DNA of 64,000 bases from Rhodosorus marinus CCMP1338 (Eukaryota; Plantae; Rhodophyta). The notes under the pieces are model-generated. The model did no database searches. It saw nothing but the letters and a program-made list of their open reading frames with translations, and was not told where the DNA came from. Positions 4,203 to 53,034 of this stretch are shown in pieces. The stretch lies in contig JAMWBK010000002.1 of the NCBI GenBank assembly GCA_029953675.1, positions 3,162,001 to 3,226,000 on the forward strand, read 5' to 3'. The number at the start of each line of letters is the position of its first letter. Position 1 is the first letter of the stretch. The translations under genes were made by a program, and so were the position numbers.

Positions 4203-6929
4203 ATGACGGACCCTCATAAGGAAGGTAAGCCGCCCAAAGCAAGTCTTCTAATGTGCTCTGGACTGTTGACGCTGAACGATTCGTTTTGATGGTTTCATAG
4301 CTTGGAAGGATAACGCTGATGGGACCGCAGTGATTGCAGGTGACCCCTGGCTTGAGAACTGGCAGGACTCCCTACGCTACAGGTAGGGAGTTTGAATTGC
4401 ACGAGCTTGCTGTGCCGATGTCCATGTATGCGGGTGTCCCTGACGCAGCGCACTTCGTCTTGTGTCCCAACAGGTACAACCAGTACTCCGAAAAGAAGGG
4501 TGCGATTGAGGAACATGAAGGAGGCCTCGAAAACTTTTCGCAAGGGTACACCTACTTTGGGCTGATCCCAAACCGAAATGGTATCAACATCCGTGAGGTA
4601 AGGCGCTGAGCCCCATGGCTGCAAGCTAAACCGATACAATGCGCTGTTTTGCGGTGTTCTGAACTTTCATTGTGGATACCCTTTCTCTTAGTGGGCGCCG
4701 GGTGCCAAGGAGATGTTCGTGTTCGGCGATTTCAACGACTGGAACAGGTATGAGCATCGCATGGAGAAGGATGAGTTCGGCGTATGGAGCATCTTCCTCA
4801 GCAACAAGAAGGACGGCTCAGCGCCAATTGCTCATGGCTCAAAAGTCAAGTTAATGCTGGTTACTCATTACGACCATCATCTCGAGAGGAACTCAGCATG
4901 GTAAGGGTTCTGCACGCGTCTTTTCCCCGCTCCTTGTGTTTTCTGACAATCACTTTCCGCCATCACGCGTACAGGGCCAAGTATGTAGTGCAGAATCCGG
5001 AAACAAACCTCTTCGACGCTTGCTTGTGGAACCCGGAAAAGAAGGACACCTACAAGTGGAAGCATCAGGTCCATGTTCCTAAGCCGAAGTCGCTGAAGAT
5101 TTACGAATGCCACGTTGGTATGAGCTCCTGTGACGCACATGTTGCGTCCTACGACTATTTCACCGATTGGGTGCTTCCTCGTATCAAGAAGTTGGGATAC
5201 AATACGATTCAGATCATGGCCATTATGGAGCACGCCTACTATGGGTCGTTCGGTTACCATGTTACGAACTTTTTCGCCGTCAGCAGCAGAAGCGGAACAC
5301 CGGAAGGTTTGAAGCGGTTGATCGATACTGCACATTCCATGGGGATAAGTGTGTTGATGGACATTGTTCACTCACATGCGTCCTCTAATGAAATGGACGG
5401 TATTGGGAATTTCGATGGCTCCGGTGGACAGTACTTCCACGAGGGAGACCGTGGTTACCATTCGCTGTGGGACAGCAAATGCTTCGACTATGGCAAATGG
5501 GAGGTTATGCGTTTCTTGCTCAGCAACCTTCGTTTCTGGGTTGACGAGTACCACTTCGATGGGTTCCGCTTTGACGGAGTTACATCCATGCTGTACACTC
5601 ATCATGGAATTCACATGTCGTTCAGTGGGAACTACGATGAGTACTTTGGATACCAGATGGACGTCGACGCAAACGTGTACCTCATGCTTGCCAATGAGAT
5701 GCTTCACGATATGTACCCTGACAGCATGATTACCATTGGAGAGGATGTGAGTGGCATGCCCACTCTGTGCCGCCCTGTGCAAGAAGGAGGCATAGGATTC
5801 GACTACCGACTCGCGATGGCGATCCCCGATGTCTTCATCGAGCTCTTCGAGAAGGTGCCCGACGAGCATTGGAACATTGGACATCTCGTTCACACACTAA
5901 CGAACAGACGCTGGAACGAAAAGACGATTGCGTACTTTGAGTCGCACGACCAGGCTCTCGTCGGCGACAAGACGATGGCTATGTGGCTGATGAATGCGGA
6001 CATGTACTACAACATGGAGGTAGACAAGTGGCCAACCGAAACAGTAGAGCGCGGTATTGCCCTGCACAAGGTGCTCCGACTCCTTGTATACAGTCTGGGT
6101 GGCGAGGGATACCTGAACTTCATGGGCAACGAATTTGGGCATCCGGAATGGATAGACTTTCCCCGTGAGGGTAATGGGTTCTCGTACAGCCACGCGAGGA
6201 GGAGATGGGACCTTCCGGCGAACGAAGGTCTCCGGTTCAAGTTCCTCGAGAAGTAAGTTGAAGGTGTCAATGTCTGTTCTCCTATGCATCGCTCCTGCTG
6301 ACGTCTTGGATCGTCTTTCTCAGGTTCGATGAGCTCATGCACGGGGTGGAAGACGAGCATTTCTTCTGTCGTGAGAATGTGCACCAGTATGTGGTCCTTC
6401 AGAACGAGGAAGACAAGGTCATCGTTGTTGAGAAAGGAGATCGTCTAGTTTTCTGCTTCAACCTTCATCCGTGGAAGCAGTACGACAACTACAGGGTCGG
6501 CACGAACTGGAGAGGAAAGTATAAAACCGTCCTTGATACTGACTCCTGGAACACTGGCGGTGGAGGCAGAGTGAACTGGGACGACAAGGAAACCAGCGAT
6601 GAGGGGTGGAATGATAGAAAGGCATCCTTATTCGTCACCATCCCACCAAGGTCAGCGCAGGTTTACTACTGCCACGAATGGTATGACGAGGGGAAGGAGG
6701 GCACTGAAAAATCCGCGGCCGCATCGAAAGCCAAAATGTCAAAGGATGGGGTAAAGGTAACCAAAATGTCAAAGGATGGGGTAAAGGTACTTTCTACCTT
6801 GACATGCAAGTTTTTCCCAATGCTCACGAAAATGGGTCTCCATGAAATCATAATTAGGTCAAAAGTAAGTGGTTTGGAACGATGGTTGACGGTATGACCG
6901 GATCCAAAGGAGAAGGTGTTGGCGCATAA
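4203..6929 (+). CDS. SBE: 1,4-alpha-glucan (starch/glycogen) branching enzyme, GH13_8 type with CBM48
   Basis: Spliced protein [35 protein letters not shown]...[18 protein letters not shown]...IYECHVGMS...[10 protein letters not shown]...[12 protein letters not shown]...IGEDVSGMP...[14 protein letters not shown]...[19 protein letters not shown]. Introns 4225-4300, 4383-4473, 4598-4691, 4901-4974, 6253-6323 and a probable last intron ending 6857 (unspliced stop would be 6897). No transit peptide, consistent with cytosolic floridean starch. Confidence 0.97.
6731..6790 (+). repeat. 30-bp tandem duplication (2 copies) spanning a splice donor at the SBE 3' end
   Basis: CCAAAATGTCAAAGGATGGGGTAAAGGTAA / CCAAAATGTCAAAGGATGGGGTAAAGGTAC; encodes KMSKDGVK twice. 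Confidence 0.95.
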
Positions 6930-19523: not shown

Positions 19524-19572
19524 CCTCCCTCCCTCCCTCCCTCCCTCCCTCCCTCCCTCCCTCTCTCTCTCT
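19524..19572. repeat. (CCCT)n/(CT)n microsatellite
   Basis: About 9 CCCT units followed by about 6 CT units. Confidence 0.95.
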
Positions 19573-36215: not shown

Positions 36216-36938
36216 ATGGCAAGTGTTAATAGGATAGGTCAGCTGAGTAAACTACTCAAGAACTCTGCTGCAGGGTATACGAAGGTCGGGAATGTACCCG
36301 CGACTGCCGCGAGGGCTGATCTGGTGAATCTGTTTTCGAAGTACGGAGTGAATGGATCTGATTGCCTGAAGATTACGAGGTCTAGGTTTGGTTCTGAAGA
36401 ATGGTGCGTGCAAGTATTTGTGCTTTGGCAGGTTGAATAAGGCGGTGAATGATAATTGCTGATCATGGAAGTGAGGTCTCCAGGATTGTAGGGCGTTTGG
36501 ATGAAAATTCTGCAGCGGCGTCACTGGTGGACTTGCAGGGTGCGATGATTGGAAGCCAGAAAGTGCGTCTTTCGCCCACGACTGATCAAGAACTCAAGCA
36601 AATTGCTGCTTCTCAAGCACTAGTCGATCCCGATGCTTCTAGTCGAAGCCTGTTTGTAAAGGGCCTCAAACAGATCGACCCGGCTTCAATCAATCGACAA
36701 ATGCAGACGCTATTCGAAGGATATTCCTTGGAAAGATTAAGCTACGATTTGGATCGGAAAACTGTGAGTCATCCCCAAGCATCGCTTCTACAGGGTTGAG
36801 AGACGTAAGCTGAACGCATTGACAACTCTCGTTTAGGTGTTGATTATTTTCGCGTCTGAAAAACAAGCGCAGGTTGCGCACCGCAACTTGAACGGTGCTT
36901 ATGTTGGATTTAGCATGATCAAACTGGAAGAAGTCTGA
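36216..36938 (+). CDS. Protein with two degenerate RRM-like domains, probably organelle-targeted
   Basis: MASVNRIGQLSKLLKNSAAG presequence-like start; YTKVGNVPATAARADLVNLFSKYG and SRSLFVKGL RNP2-like motifs; last exon VLIIFASEKQAQVAHRNLNGAYVGFSMIKLEEV*. Introns start GTGCGT and GTGAGT. Confidence 0.7.
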
Positions 36939-37452
36939 GTTAGGAGCTTTTTGTCTTGTTCGCTTGAAGACATAAGCTCGAACCTTTCTGAAGTGCTCCG
37001 GTTTAGCCCAGAAGACGGGCCCACTCTAAGTTTAATCCGGGGCGTGTCGGCAACATATTTTCAAGTCTGGGGAGGGTTGGTGGGAGCAAAAAAGTATCTT
37101 GAAGATGAGCGCTTGCTCAATCGCGATCCACACTGACTGGAATCTAAGCAAATGCGCTTCGCGCCGATTATATTATTGGTTCGTATGGGTCGACCCCTTC
37201 AGACAATTCGTTCGAAGATGGATAACGGGCCTCGCTTCAGTGCAGAGGTATTTAGCAACGCACCCGGTTATAATACTTAGGACAGCAGGGGAATTCACAT
37301 GTAAATGAACGCCCTCCCGGGATGCAATCAACTTTTTCTCTGGCCGTGCTGGAACCGCGAGGATGCCCTCCCCGACTAGCTGGCGAAAGCAATGATGTAA
37401 AGCCAAAACAAACAACCTCGTTAGTCAAAAGCGTCTAAAAGAACAAGACACT

Positions 37453-38730
37453 TATGACAGGGCATTCCCATCGACGAGATGGTTGCCGTGAAGCTACCTA
37501 TTCTTTCCTTCCGCAGCACTAGTAGCCTTGAAGGATATAACTCTCCTAGCTTGCCTGTCAGAAAGTCGAAACGAAATTACACCAAAAGCTCGTCGCTAAA
37601 GGGAGGATATGTATGACAATACTCCCATCGTCGAGGTGGTGCAGTGAAGCTAGGTCTTCATTTCTTCCGCAGTACTGCCAACCTTGAAGGATAGAACTCT
37701 TCTGACCCTTCTGTCCGCAACTCAAAACGAAGGAACACCCAAAGCTGACGCTAGCTAGCAACTGGATGTTTATGACAATATTCCCATCGACAAGATGGTC
37801 GCAGTGAAGCTAGGTTTTCCTTCATTCCGCAGTACTAGTAACCTTGAAGGAGAAACCTCTTCTCAACCCTTCTGTCCGAAACTTGAAACGAAAAAACACC
37901 CAGAGCGTCGCTGCCAATGTCGACTCTGTGGGCTCGGGAGTCTGGGTAAGCGGGCTGGAGGCAGCTGTCGCTGGTGATCTAGCAACGATGTTACCAGCTT
38001 GCTTACAGCGACTCTCGAAGCGCACGGAGTAGCCGACGGTCGATGGCAGTGGAGATGTAGAAAACTACATCAGCAAGCTCGAACATTTGCTAGCAGTCTA
38101 CGCAGGTACAGACGAGCGCGATAGACTGTTTGTGACGGTCAGGGGTCTAGCAAAACGGGCACCGAATGGTACCGTGTGCTGCCAATAAACCAGCTTACTT
38201 CGTGGGCGGAGCTACCAATGGCCCTGAGGGGCGGTACGCCATCCACAACAAGGATGCGGACTGGCGAAGCAAATCTCCAGATGCGACAACGAGAGGGAGC
38301 AAGCGCCAGCGACTACACTACGCAATTTGAAACGACGTTGGAGCACCTCAAACGCTTCGAGGAGGTGTTGTTGAGTGATTTCATGCAGGTTCAGTCCTTT
38401 TTGCCAATATTCGCATCCACGAGATGGGCAACCCCAGTCCCTCGCAGTGAAGCTAGGTCTTCCTTCCTTCCGCAGTACTAGTAACCTTGAAGGATACAAT
38501 CCTTCCAACCCTTCTGTCCAAAAGTCAAAGCGAAAACAACTCGATGCATCGCTGCTAAGAACAGGATATTCATGCAATATTCCCATCGACGAGATGGTCG
38601 CAGTGAAGCTAAGTCTTCCTTCCTTCCTTCCTTCCGCAGTGCTAGTAACCTTGATAAACACAATTCTTCTAACCTTCTGTCCGAAAGCCAAAGCGAAAGC
38701 CATCCAAAGCTTCGCTTCTGCGAAGAAACA
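37453..38730 (+). repeat. Array of five degenerate ~159-bp repeat units (starts ~37453, 37612, 37771, ~38403, ~38571), interrupted after unit 3
   Basis: Recurring core ATTCCCATCGACGAGATGGTCGCAGTGAAGCTAGGTCTTCCTTCCTTCCGCAGTACTAGTAACCTTGAAGGATA...CCTTCTGTCC. Units 1 and 2 are each 159 bp by start-to-start distance. Confidence 0.93.
38033..38395 (+). pseudogene. Decayed retrotransposon gag (Ty3/gypsy capsid-like) fragment
   Basis: PTVDGSGDVENYISKLEHLLAVYAGTDERDRLFVTVRGL, then a frameshift near 38150-38165, then EWYRVLPINQLTSWAELPMALR...LQMRQREGASASDYTTQF. This follows the Retrotrans_gag pattern (DG.gDv..yi..fE; A..Wy..lp...sW.eL; Q..g.s..dY...F). A TAG at 38030-38032 precedes it. No pol or LTR seen. 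Confidence 0.72.
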
Positions 38731-38983
38731 GAATATTTAGCAGCTTCCCAATGTTGAGATTTTGGCCTTGAGATGCACTCCGGGAGATCATGAAATGGCC
38801 GTGAACCCCTTGAGCTTGAATGAGGAATTGATAAGTACTGGTGATGAAAAAGGTCAAGGTGTTTGATACTGCTGAGTTAGAGGAGGGCAAGTTCTGAGCA
38901 TTAGGAAATCGTTTTTGGATAAGAGGTTGAGGATACCCGTGATTTTGTTTTGCGAAGGTCTGGAAAGTACCGGGTTCGAATCG

Positions 38984-40753
38984 ATGGCGTGGGTTGGGTT
39001 CGTCAGCGGATTTGGAGTGAAGGCGAAGCGCGTTGTGGGTGAGAGATGTGCGGGAAGGAGAAGGGAGTTTATTTGTCTGGCTGAGAGTGGTGGTCAGGCT
39101 GCGCCTGCTTTTCAGAGGACGGAGGACACGTTCCAGCAGGATGCTGGGAAGGATCTGTTCTTTCCAGGTCTGGATGAGGAAAAGGCGATTGAGCTGATTG
39201 GAACGGGGTCCACTGATATGGAAGATCCATCGGAGAGGTATATCGCTGCGGAAAGGCTCAAGTTTTATCCAAGCCAAGCTTCCACAGACGCGCTACTGAA
39301 ATGCGTGAACGACAAGTCATCTACGGAACTGTATGACCTTATCGCGAGACGTAAGTCTATCGAGAGCCTTGGACATTTTAAAGGGGAATTTTCTAGGGAG
39401 GAAGTGATCGAAACGCTAGTGAGCAGTCTCCAAAGCTCGGATCCGTATGAAGCTGAAGTGGCGGTGTGGGCACTCTCCAAACTTGGGGCAAAAGCTCCAG
39501 ATGTGATTGACGCAGTCGACGCGATCTTGGATCGTGATGACGTGAACAAGCGTGTGGTCATACAGTCCTTGGCGCAGATGGACAGCAAGAAATCAGTAGA
39601 TAAGATTAGGCGATATCTCGACGACGAAGATCTGGCGACTCGCTGCTCTGCCATTGGCGCCATCTACAGCCTGTCTGGAAATGATGACGTTATGGCAGGT
39701 AAATTGTACCACAAGCGGCGGACAAGAGTATTGAAGTCAACGTCCCTACAGACTGTGTACTGATGATCTCGTTCGCGTGAACGGCAGGTATTTTTGACGT
39801 CCTCAAGAGCAATGATTTGAATCAGCGAAGAGCAGCAATAGAGGACATCACAAGGGCAAAGTATTTACCGGCTTTAGACAGGGTTATCGAGACTGCCAAC
39901 TCACTGGTGCTGAAGTCCCGCGCCGTTCGGGAAATGGTAGGAGCTGAGAATCGACGGGAGGACTTGGAATGGAATGATGACCTGGCTAAGAAGCTAGACA
40001 TTCTGATTTGGGACAACCCAAGATCAATCAACCTTCTCGGCACCGTTGCAGATACCTCTAAAGCTCGCTCCGTACAAAGATGCGTAAACAGACTGTACAA
40101 CAATGACGCGCTGCAATCGTATCTCGGAGCCAAGGTGCTGCTTGAAGACCACAGAGACAACGACGAGGCTGGAGCTCAGGCAAGTCCGGGCGAATTGCCC
40201 AGAACAGCATGAAGCGGCTACATATCTTTCTTGAACTCTGACACCTAGCTTTTTTGTACTGGGGGATGTCGGCCAGGTTCTGGACAGATTCAACTCCATG
40301 GAGTATTTTGACTACTTCGCTGCCTACCACGTCTTCAAAGCCCTCGGATGGTTGTCCTACAAGCCTTCTGAGGGTCTTCTCCTTGATAATTTTAGAACGC
40401 TTCCCCCGCGTTTCTTCAATCACAAAGCGGGGGCTTGTCTCAGTCTCTGCAAGATTGGGTCGGAGTCGGCTCTGGATGACTTTTTGAAGGTACATAGCGC
40501 TTCCCCCTTGGCTTGTGGCGATAAAAGTGTTCACCACGTGGGGAAAGGTTAATGAAATGATAAACATCTGCTTTTCACTTCTCCCTCACAGATCGGAAAA
40601 GAAACCAACATTTGGGAGCTGAAATACGCGTGTTTGATCGCGGCTGAGAGGCTTGGCGACAATAGGCTAAGGAGAGAATTTCAGGACGACTCGGACTGGC
40701 TAATCAGGTCACGAGCGCAAACAGAGCTAGGATTTGAGCACCTGACCTTGTAA
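38984..40753 (+). CDS. cpeY: CpeY-family (fused CpcE/F-type HEAT-repeat) phycoerythrobilin lyase with plastid transit peptide
   Basis: Colinear with cyanobacterial CpeY as I recall it: LDEEKAIELI...SERYIAAERLKFYP, IARRKSIESLG, EVAVWALSKLG, RVVIQSLAQM, RRAAIEDI, LYNNDALQSYLGAKVLLEDH, DYFAAYHVFKALGWL, KAGACLSL, IWELKYACLIAAERLG, DSDWLIRSRA. Presequence MAWVGFVSGFGVKAKRVVGERC. Introns 39699-39787, 40180-40276 (GC-AG), 40490-40591. Confidence 0.88.
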
Positions 40754-41722: not shown

Positions 41723-42176
41723 TAGAAGGCATTCTCTCTTCCCTCAGCGCAAACAATGGCCTTCCTTTTGGCCCGTCGCATGGCAGAACATTGGCATTTC
41801 CATGGCCGAGTTAAAACAACCAAATTTTTGGAAAGGAAAGTGTTTTCAGCAGAAGACGTGTGAAGCACGGTTTTAACAGCTGGCATTCTTGAAGGTGTTG
41901 TGTTGTCGTTTTTACCGCAAGGTTGGCTTTTCTAGTCAGTTGGGGGATTGTGGGAAGGGTGGAGGGAAGGGTAGGGTAGGGTTGAGTCTGAGCGGGCATG
42001 GGGTGTGCATCTATCTTGGACGTGTTAGAGTTTTCTTGATTAAAACGTCTGCAGGTTTGTTGGCAGAGATGAGGCTCTTTTGAATGTACTTTTGAAGGGA
42101 ACACCCTACTTTTTCGGGTTTTAAGGGGAACAACGAGGAAGGAGAGTAGAGGGATTTTCTTTTGGGTGGAGCAAAA

Positions 42177-45100
42177 ATGTCTAAGGCTTTTACTAACGCG
42201 AAGAAAGGGGAACTTTATGAATTGAAAGCTGAACTCAATTCGCAGAGCAACTCAACTCGAAAAGAAGCTGTTAGAAAGACGATCGCGGCAATGACCATTG
42301 GACGCGACGTTTCTGGTCTTTTTACAGATGTTCTCAACTGCATGCAAAGCCCTAATATCGAGATAAAAAAGCTGGTTTATTTGTATATCGTGAACTATGC
42401 TCACACCAAGCCGGTACGTCGTATCTCTCGAGATCAAAAGATACAGAAGAAGAGTTCTGACACAATCGAGGGCGCTGTAATGCAGGATTTGGCGATTCTT
42501 GCTGTAAACTCTTTTGTAAGAGATAGCGCAGATCCGAATCCTCTGCTGAGAGCGCTTGCCATTCGGACGATGGCATGCATACGGGTTGACAAGATTGTTG
42601 AGTACTTATTGGAACCTCTTCAAAGAACACTGCACGATCAGGACCCCTATGTCCGAAAGACTGCTGCTGTCTGTGTTGCAAAGTTGCACGCCATGAACCC
42701 GGAGCTGGTCCAGGACCAGGGCATGCTGGATTCCTTGTTGGACCTACTCACCGATGGAAATCCCATGGTGGTTTCTAATGCTGTGGCCTCCCTTATGGAT
42801 ATCGCCGAATACCGTCCAGGTGTCTTCAAGATCGATTCGCCTTTGGTGATGAAACTTCTTCACGCCCTGAATGAGTGCAATGAATGGGGACAAGTGCTGC
42901 TCCTAGATGCACTCGCCGAGTACAATCCTAGAAATCACGACGAAGCGGACGCAATCGTTGAACGAGTCACATCGAGACTCCAGCATGCGAATGGGGCGGT
43001 TGTTCTCGCCGCCACAAGGATAGTGATTGCCAACGCAGAAAAGCTGAGCTCTGATGAGAAGCGGGTGCATAGCTTGAAAAAGCTGACTGCCCCTCTGATT
43101 TCTCTGTTGAGTGCTAATGGCGAGTTCCAGTACGTTGCCCTGAGGAGCATACGCGTTATCAACCAAAAGTACAGTTTTCTGTTCCAAAACGATGTGCGAG
43201 TGTTCTTTTGCAAGTACAACGATCCTCTTTACGTGAAATTTGAGAAGGTAGAGCTCCTTATCGCTCTACTAGACGAGTCGAATTCCTCGATGGTCTTGCA
43301 AGAGATGAACGAGTACGCTTCAGAGGTGGACATGGACTTTGTAAAGAAGAGCATAGACGGTATCGGCAGAATCGCCCTGGCCACGGAGGCTTCGGCGGAC
43401 AAGTGTGTGGAGCTTCTCGTCGCCTTACTGAAAGCTGGACACGAAGGTGTGACTGACCAGTCCGTTGTCGTTTTAAAGAACATATTCAGAAGGTAGGATT
43501 GGATGCCGTATGAAATATTATCTTCTCTGATAGTAACTGACAGCTCGAATGGTGTGTTGATTTACCTGTTGCAGCTACCCTCAGAGGTACTTGAACGTGG
43601 TAAATGTTATCTGCGAGAATTGTGAATCCATTGGTGAACCCGATGCGAAAGCGTCCATGGTCTGTGCCCACCCCGAGTAGCCGTCCTCCCTGGTCTTTGG
43701 CCTCAAACTGATTGTGTTTATTCTGCGCTTGAAATGTAATGTACAGATCTGGATTTTTGGAGAGTACGCAGAGCATATTCCACAAGTTGTAGAGCTCTTG
43801 GGAGAACTGATGGAGGGCTTTTCTACGGAGCCTCTGAGTGTTCAGCTTCAGCTCCTGTCTTCCACTGTCAAAGTGTACCTGGCAAGAGGGGACGAAGGAA
43901 AGAGATTGGTAGAGTCAGCTCTTCGGCTCAGTACGAAGGAGACGTACAATATGGATTTGCGGGATAGAGGATACGCATTTTCACGTCTTCTTGCCTGCGG
44001 AGATGAAGTTGCTAGAAAGGTCATTATGAACGAGAGGCCCGCGGTAAGCGATAACAGAGGCGAGATGAACGCAGATCTGCAAGAAGATTTGAGCAGGAAT
44101 ATGGGCAAAATGAGCAGTTTGCTGATGAGAAAGTCAGCGAGTTTGAGGTCCCCAACGGCTCCGCCAGTGCTCACCGTTGGGGATAATGATAATCTATTAT
44201 CGATGAGCAATGACGATTTATTGATGATTGACGATGGACCCTCGGATGCCACGCAAGCACTTGAGAACGGCTCGAATCAGTTCCTGGGAACCGACGACTT
44301 GATCGGTGCTCTACCTTCTGTCGCGAATGGAAGCCAACCACCACGAAAAGATACTAAAGCAGGGAACCTTCTGGATGAGCTTTTCGGGGCGCCAGGTAAG
44401 AGCACTGACCAGCGAGCGCTTGAGCGTGTGAGGATTTCATTCGACTCATCTTTATTCGGCTTTCCTCTTCTATTCCACCAGCGGCACCTGCTATGGCTCC
44501 TGCGAGAGCTCAACCTCTGCCGCCAGTGGACGATATTCTCTCACTCCCGTCTACGCAGCCGCAAAAGAAAACACATGACACAGATATTTCGGCCCTAGGT
44601 GTTGATGGTGGCGGGGAACCCGCTGATTCAATTCCGTCGACACAACGGAACTCCTTGTCTGCCGCTGGCCTCTCGGCAGAAAGTCCCGAAGACAACAACA
44701 AAAATCAGCTAACTAAGGTGTTGGGAGCGGAGAAGGGGAAAGGGTTGATCATATTCGCGGAGCTTAGAAGGATTGACGATTCTCTTTTCCTGGAGATGGA
44801 ATTCCAGAACACGTTGCAGGTCCCAATGGGAGGCTTCGCGGCGCAGTTCAACAAGAACGCGTTTGGGATTGTTCCATCCTCCGCTCTGTCTTTGAGTGAA
44901 CCACTGAAGGCTTTGAAGTCCGAGGTTGTTATGGTGCCGCTGAAGTTTGGGGGAGCTGTGGATCTAGAGAAAGGGGCGATGTTGCAGTTGGCTATCAAAT
45001 GTGAGCCTTGCGGGGTTTTATACATGATTTACGACGTTGGGAAGCATCTAGACGCGCTCTTCTCAGCAGACGGAGGAGTTGCGAAGCAAGAGTTTCTTCA

Positions 45101-45422
45101 GCTGTGGGGTCAGACGTTGGACCAGTCCGAAGTATTGAGACCTGTGTCCATGGCACCATTTAGAGAGGACCAGGAGCTCTTCCAGAAGCTGCACAACGCG
45201 AAGGTGTTTTTCACTGCTAAGCGAGGGGGGCAGGGTGGAGCTCTTTTCGTTGCGTACTTCGCAGCGAGAGTTGAAGGGGTACAGACGCAATTCTTGATCG
45301 AATTGACTGTGAATAGCCGGACGGCAGCAAAATGTGCCGTTCGCCCTGTTGGGAACTGTCCTCAGGCTCTCGTCGCTTCGATGGCCATGACCGTTGAAAA
45401 GATCCTAACGGATTCGGGCTGA
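42177..45422 (+). CDS. AP1B1: AP-1/AP-2 complex beta subunit (beta-adaptin)
   Basis: KKGELYELKAELNS...RKEAVRKTIAAMTIGRDVSGLF...KKLVYLYIVNYA...DPNPLLRALAIRTM...DPYVRKTAAVCVAKL...ECNEWGQ...FFCKYNDPLYVKFEK...LQEMNEYASEVD, hinge with LLDELFG clathrin-box-like motif, and ear domain (GFAAQFNKNAFG...EFLQLWG). AP1B versus AP2B cannot be separated by eye. Confidence 0.95.
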
Positions 45423-52994: not shown

Positions 52995-53034
52995 CACAAA
53001 GCATGCGACGCACAAAGCATGCGACGCACAAAGC
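52995..53034. repeat. 16-bp tandem repeat, 2.5 copies
   Basis: CACAAAGCATGCGACG CACAAAGCATGCGACG CACAAAGC. Confidence 0.92.

Follow-up and report, generated by a model that had tools for sequence, protein, structure and literature searches.

We found a short minisatellite interrupted by the degraded remnant of a retrotransposon capsid gene in the ~2-kb spacer between an RRM-like and a cpeY-like gene. A fragment of Ty3/gypsy-type gag probably entered this array when the array already existed as non-coding DNA, and both parts would then have decayed neutrally. The locus is real but ordinary, that is, genomic debris and not a gene.

The window, by which we mean the whole 64-kb stretch of DNA analysed, is eukaryotic nuclear DNA with ~49% G+C. 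Pfam identifies genes for a beta-adaptin, an alpha-amylase, a class-3 lipase and a HEAT/PBS-lyase protein (cpeY-like) in it. The DNA is probably red-algal, judging by this phycobilisome-lyase gene in the nucleus and by the gag relatives described below, which stem from the red alga Rhodosorus marinus. The cpeY-like gene lies immediately downstream of the array, with its ATG at 38984, ~247 bp 3′ of the last unit. For the RRM-like gene upstream, neither of the two ORF pieces tried has a Pfam match at E <= 0.01. The features of the locus and its flanking genes are listed in Table 1.

Table 1. Features of the array, its gag-bearing insert and the flanking genes (u, unit).
Feature	Position	Strand	Basis or remark
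Upstream flanking gene, earlier labelled RRM, ORF pieces	36216..36930	+	ORF list; outside the feature
u0, degenerate partial unit, tail only, left edge of array	37399..37459	+	Local alignment, weak
u1, full unit, most diverged	37460..37616	+	72-75% identity to other units
u2	37617..37775	+	Tandem Repeats Finder, repeat finder, alignment
u3, shortened unit	37776..37918	+	~19 nt of unit tail absent (TAAGAACAGGATATTCATG in u4)
GCCAAT, left copy of 6-bp direct repeat	37913..37918	+	Read from sequence
Linker, 87 bp	37919..38005	+	No similarity to the unit or to Rhodosorus relatives
Ty3/gypsy-type gag (capsid) relic	38006..38403	+	tblastn/tblastx limits, phmmer, piecewise three-frame alignment
GCCAAT, right copy	38403..38408	+	Read from sequence
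u4, full unit from first base of unit	38404..38574	+	14-nt insertion GCAACCCCAGTCCC
u5	38575..38737	+	8-nt (CTTC)2 microsatellite expansion at 38615-38635
Downstream flanking cpeY-like HEAT/PBS-lyase gene	38984..40212	+	Pfam HEAT_2 3e-17, HEAT_PBS 5e-6

The array consists of five units, all direct (+) and in register, with three on the left and two on the right of a 484-bp insert (repeat finder). A preliminary description of this DNA had given the same layout with an insert of ~470 bp, and this layout is real. The unit length of 159 bp, or 53 codons, given there has to be revised. Tandem Repeats Finder places the period on the left side at 156 bp (37464-37906, 2.8 copies, 77% matches), the unit consensus is 156 nt long, and the start-to-start spacings of the five units vary (156-157, 159-161, 629-643 and 156-170; repeat finder). 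A 27-nt core of the unit occurs four times at <=3 mismatches compared to 0 occurrences expected by chance, and none of these lies beyond the array in the 64-kb window. Accordingly placed are the matches of 37400-38800 to the window in a self-blastn: all are unit-to-unit, with E values down to 1e-55. The repeat finder reports no inverted repeats in the region, and the DNA pattern of the unit has 0 matches in JGI metagenome contigs.

Overall, the units are 72-85% identical to each other, i.e. 15-28% apart. Pairwise identities include u4-u5 (84.8%), u3-u4 (82.7%), u3-u5 (81.2%), u2-u3 (81.0%) and u2-u4 (77.9%), each computed on ~138 sites with a standard error of ~3%. Similarity drops steadily toward u1 and u0, irrespective of the insert. 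At the left edge, 37399-37456 aligns to consensus positions 104-156 with a score of 15, for which shuffled sequences give 9.9 +/- 1.7 (7 of 500 reach 15). At the insert, the last unit similarity of u3 is found at 37912-37917, its final bases being ..CGCTGC. No further unit similarity extends the array 3′ of u5 or into the 87-bp linker. With units arranged head to tail at a constant period, and with no coding or structured-RNA signal, the array is a minisatellite.

The other tandem repeats in the window that score >=80 are a perfect 30-bp tandem duplication at 6731-6789 inside the ORF 6337-6897, a (CCTC)12 microsatellite at 19524-19571 and a 16-bp repeat at 52995-53034.

The units are non-coding. 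One of two earlier readings had taken them for Ser/Lys-rich coding modules, in view of one frame that recurs across copies. This frame does recur in parts of the units, and, as had been seen for several copies, stops or 1-nt indels interrupt it; we find a stop or an indel in every unit. A stop precedes the unit end even in the consensus, and in u3 the frame changes internally between NIPID..LEG and NPSVRNLKRK. Differences between units are even over the three codon positions of the proposed frame (0.197/0.172/0.213, pairwise). Likewise, the dN/dS comparison among units suggested in the preliminary description reveals no codon-like pattern: Nei-Gojobori pN/pS is alike in all three frames, at 0.80 for the proposed one and at 0.79 and 0.86 for the two controls. 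No unit frame has a Pfam match reaching the gathering score. The 39-codon open frame in the 156-nt consensus is unremarkable over six frames (~0.08 per whole-unit 52-codon frame).

The frame said to stay open from u4 into u5 exists as an ORF of 121 aa (38375-38740), but past the (CTTC)2 expansion in u5 it no longer reads the recurrent peptide. This ORF has no homologues at E <= 0.1 among 5.8 billion proteins, over the length range 66-212 aa. The frame said to run from u3 into gag across a single stop is likewise correct in part. The second half of u3 (NPSVRNLKRK) leads through the linker and across the TAG into the first gag piece in a single frame, but three frameshifts more are needed to read the remainder. 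Such continuity carries no weight because it is a 1-in-3 chance event. The N-terminal gag region of the relatives described below has no resemblance to the unit. Finally, no Rfam family reaches the gathering score in the window, or E <= 1 in 36900-39000, and the 64-kb window contains no tRNA genes.

On the opposite strand, an ATG-initiated ORF of 163 aa (38212-38703, -) covers u5, u4 and some of the relic. Pfam gives no match for it and it has no record as a called gene; by our estimate, chance alone would produce ~2.4 ORFs this long in the six frames of 64 kb.

The interval between u3 and u4 contains the gag-like sequence. Using HMMER (phmmer) with 38125-38430 as query against 1.84 billion representative proteins, we obtained seven matches. 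Four of these are credible: P0001 (E 1.9e-16), P0002 (5.2e-12), P0003 (8.4e-5) and P0006 (9e-4). We dismissed the other three, which are repetitive proteins aligned on a short low-complexity stretch. The nearest relatives that can be named are the Rhodosorus marinus MMETSP0315 transcripts P0001-P0003, P0006, P0009 and P0010. P0002 and the related cluster P0008 lead to this transcriptome via cluster members; P0001 and P0003 share a JGI sample with P0002, and P0006 comes from a second JGI sample.

These relatives are recognised by capsid profiles. P0001-P0003 and a longer version, P0010, exceed the Retrotrans_gag (PF03732) gathering score with 31.4-46.3 bits compared to 24.1, P0001-P0003 by themselves scoring 37.8-46.3 bits. 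P0002 (31.3 bits), P0003 (34.5 bits), P0010 and an extended P0001 (L001:259-915) also exceed the Ty3_capsid profile (PF19259), at 30.3-36.2 bits compared to 29.1. Transcript L001 in addition encodes an Integrase_H2C2 domain 3′ of gag (32.6 bits, gathering score 25.5), followed by an rve core, and nothing 3′ of the integrase. Since gag precedes the integrase and the integrase comes last, this is the Ty3/gypsy gene order. Judged by its sequence relatives, which pass Pfam capsid profiles and one of which has a downstream gypsy-type integrase, the relic is genuine Ty3/gypsy-type capsid sequence, as the preliminary description had proposed.

The relic itself spans approximately residues 60-192 of the 321-aa P0010. 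It resembles Ty3/gypsy (Metaviridae-type) gag in the capsid N-terminal domain, with 38-53% aa identity over ~133 residues, and it keeps the motif order of Rhodosorus gag (RLPKRSEAP-FDG-DVE, FVTVRGLAK..EWYR.LP...SWAEL, QREGA..DY..EFE..L.HL, FMQ.QLF). In the profile search that had been suggested as a check, the longest uninterrupted piece (38125-38478) matches PF03732 over profile positions 13-92 of 97 with E 7.8e-4 and 20.1 bits, which is below the cut-off of 24.1; searching the frameshifted pieces separately lowers the score.

In total, the relic carries one stop and three frameshifts and lacks both ends. The stop is a TAG at 38030-38032. One frameshift results from the loss of 1 nt (A) in the A-run at 38152-38155, and two more are placed near 38230 and near 38272 by piecewise alignment; between the latter two, the third frame reads RYAIHNKDADWRSK compared to RFASHNQDVELATK in P0001. 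The N-terminal coiled-coil/Q-rich part is absent, as is everything after ..FMQ.QLF.. The 3′ break at the u4 junction falls inside the capsid domain, at Retrotrans_gag profile position ~92 of 97. The 87-bp linker on the other side could represent sequence from further upstream in gag that has diverged.

Unlike a complete Ty3/gypsy element, the locus is devoid of the rest of the capsid and of PR, RT, RNase H, IN and LTRs. This agrees with the preliminary description, which had seen no pol, PBS or paired LTRs. The self-blastn described above offers no paired LTRs, a tblastx search of the window against transcripts L001-L004, which encode gag and integrase, matches 38006-38403 alone, so that no further gag, integrase or RT similarity to them was found in the window, and the tRNA search gave nothing. 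None of the ten ORFs scanned with Pfam in the window contains a TE domain, and the relic has no second copy in the 64-kb window.

The footprint of this gag lineage appears remarkably narrow. Searches of 1.84 billion representative proteins and 5.8 billion clusters give as its credible relatives only a few MMETSP transcripts, those that can be traced being from Rhodosorus marinus. A word-based search with the gag piece gave no candidate having three words in common; the same search with the family alignment gave five Rhodosorus clusters and nothing else. Searching JGI metagenome contigs with the gag alignment gave 114 pattern matches, 0 of which were confirmed. None of L001-L004 contains the 156-bp unit or a long-period repeat, and a CAG/CAA tract is found upstream of gag instead; this comparison is a weak one, the relatives being those of another organism or else old paralogues at 65% nt identity.

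Two of these transcripts have features of their own. L001 (Rhodosorus marinus, 2492 nt) is a transcribed but defective gypsy copy at 259-2064: the integrase (H2C2, rve and C-terminal pieces) lies in three frames directly 3′ of gag, protease and RT/RNase H are absent, and a CAG/CAA tract occupies 156-266 upstream of the capsid core. In L002, positions 1-900, 5′ of gag, contain Ty1/copia-type RT-like motifs in three frames (..YLATITRPDISYAV..). These motifs, judged by eye, suggest nested or adjacent elements of two superfamilies.

We then consider the junctions between array and insert. The insert starts with GTCGAC and stops inside a gag codon, and it has no TG..CA element termini. A GCCAAT repeat is found at both ends, the G of the right copy also completing the final codon with gag homology. 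By a rough estimate, 5-6-mers would match by chance this close to both junctions (+/-6 nt) with a probability of ~0.04-0.14. Because no element termini adjoin it, the GCCAAT pair is probably not an integrase target-site duplication. Together with the small loss of unit sequence, it is compatible with break repair involving a short duplication or microhomology. The preliminary description had stated that its reading would be refuted by a common satellite unit without a codon-like pattern together with a target-site duplication of the gag piece. This is mostly what we find, codon-like change being absent and a candidate duplication of 5-6 bp bracketing gag. The identity of u3 and u4 is comparable to that of adjacent pairs (u2-u3 and u4-u5), suggesting that u3 and u4 are former neighbours in one array; with ~138 sites and a standard error of ~3%, this argument is suggestive only.

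Within the relic, an 11-nt stretch GATTTCATGCA (38377-38387), 18 nt before the actual relic/u4 junction, resembles the tail/head junction of the unit, GATATTCATGCA (e.g. 38564-38578). Chance may account for this likeness, or microhomology-guided repair may have left it as a trace, and it could also hint at a relationship between unit and element. A tblastn match of E 1.5 and a common TTCATGCA led us to consider the unit as a descendant of the gag segment that would follow the break on its 3′ side. We rejected this candidate: a profile of that segment built from four relatives scores -0.4 and -1.2 bits on the units in six frames, and 182 and 384 of 500 shuffles, respectively, score the same or better.

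The succession of events that we infer, with the array first and the fragment second, includes two possible routes of entry. An old non-coding array of five to six ~156-bp units would have been present in the RRM-like/cpeY-like spacer when a piece of a Ty3/gypsy LTR-retrotransposon came between u3 and u4. This piece may have been a cDNA or DNA fragment captured during the repair of a break in the array. Alternatively, it may be the remainder of a full insertion from which deletions have taken away the LTRs, pol and all other parts of gag, including its N-terminus. The site would have lost ~19 nt of unit sequence, with the 5-6 bp repeat GCCAAT now at both junctions, and the array and the gag fragment would have decayed neutrally afterwards. 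The locus today would have nothing translated or mobile and no function of its own.

The capture of filler DNA or retrotransposon cDNA at repaired double-strand breaks is a known process, and nested TE remnants are known in tandem repeats. The locus resembles such break-repair capture in its doubly truncated internal TE fragment, in the loss of 19 nt of the target and in the short junction repeat or microhomology. A full insertion with subsequent deletions would leave the same picture.

The units could instead have been borne by the element, as tandem repeats in its LTRs or UTRs (comparable to plant Ogre/Tat-like elements). The locus would then be a heavily deleted non-autonomous copy consisting of a repeat-bearing 5′ end, a gag remnant and a repeat-bearing 3′ end. 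We judge this unlikely. Units of the same orientation do flank a sense-oriented gag fragment on both sides, the unit is confined to the locus as far as the 64-kb window and the JGI metagenome contigs are concerned, and the resemblance of GATTTCATGCA to the unit junction can be read in this direction. Nevertheless, a pair of LTRs would be expected to correspond unit by unit and to have sequence besides the units in common. The left and right arrays have nothing in common except the units, which leaves no LTR bodies, and they show no left-right pairing, the identities of u2-u4 and u3-u5 being below those of u3-u4 and u4-u5. In addition, gag breaks off within the capsid domain directly against the units, UTR, PBS and PPT all being absent from the junction, the window has no tRNA gene, the four Rhodosorus relatives lack the unit, and the profile of the gag segment 3′ of the break matches nothing in the units. 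For these reasons we do not favour the non-autonomous element with amplified terminal repeats that the preliminary description had offered as one of its readings. LTR-retrotransposons carrying short tandem arrays, from which satellite DNA can arise, are well documented in plants (Vondrak et al. 2020, PMC7004042), which lends the idea some support, and as in those arrays, units of 100-200 bp adjoin retrotransposon coding sequence here. However, the plant arrays occupy a defined non-coding part of recognisable elements present in many copies, whereas here a broken internal gag piece lies between the two parts of the array, the element is unrecognisable and the relatives are without the array. 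A bolder version, which we regard as improbable, is that units and gag form one undescribed non-autonomous red-algal retroelement that would depend on the Rhodosorus-type gypsy family for mobilisation in trans, or that the array was seeded from that element as a nascent TE-derived satellite in a compact red-algal genome. If true, this element would retain only a capsid remnant between repeat-built termini.

Far less credible is the reading as a decaying host gene, in which a domesticated gag was fused in frame to amplified Ser/Lys-rich modules of 52-53 codons and is now a pseudogene. As this reading would have it, a common frame can be followed through stretches of every unit, the latter half of u3 continues in frame past a single TAG into the first gag piece, and u4 and u5 are joined by one ORF. 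It is already largely refuted: third-position or synonymous changes are not in excess, the unit consensus contains a stop, the unit peptide has no homologues, and gag breaks off within the capsid domain where u4 begins, has lost its N-terminal coiled coil and needs three frameshifts to be read, while the in-frame junction has the 1-in-3 chance given above. The domesticated or chimeric gene of the preliminary description is thereby abandoned. Domesticated gag genes of the PEG10/Arc type serve here only as a comparison. Like them, the locus has capsid sequence derived from gag and no neighbouring pol, but its capsid domain is truncated, it has no intact ORF, and its units show no sign of selection. 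The least probable reading of all is that the repeats or the gag similarity are unreal, or that a mis-assembly has put them side by side. We found no point in its support; the four core matches compared to none expected, the blastn E values, the gag match of 1.9e-16 among 1.84 billion proteins, and diverged units next to a degraded relic, unlike a collapse artefact, all argue against it. Entry of a gag fragment into an existing minisatellite is thus the reading that we consider probable.

Two observations concern the genes nearby. The cpeY-like gene has a putative GT-AG intron at 39699-39787 (splice sites read from the sequence), which joins ..NDDVMA-G-IFDVLKSNDL.. and restores the frame between the ORFs 38915-39763 and 39817-40212. 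The beta-adaptin gene (42162-45422, +) is split over three ORFs (42162-43496, 43714-44598 and 44493-45422) and therefore has introns or frame changes.

The locus has little significance in itself: it is neutral debris, and one candidate for a domesticated gag or chimeric gene can be struck off. It does offer a clean case of a doubly truncated TE fragment in a minisatellite ~250 bp upstream of a phycobiliprotein-lyase-like gene, and, should array or insert prove polymorphic, it could be used to mark strains. Finally, the locus points to a Ty3/gypsy gag lineage whose relatives are detectable in Rhodosorus marinus alone among the 1.84 billion representatives, and this lineage may help the annotation of repeats in red algae.
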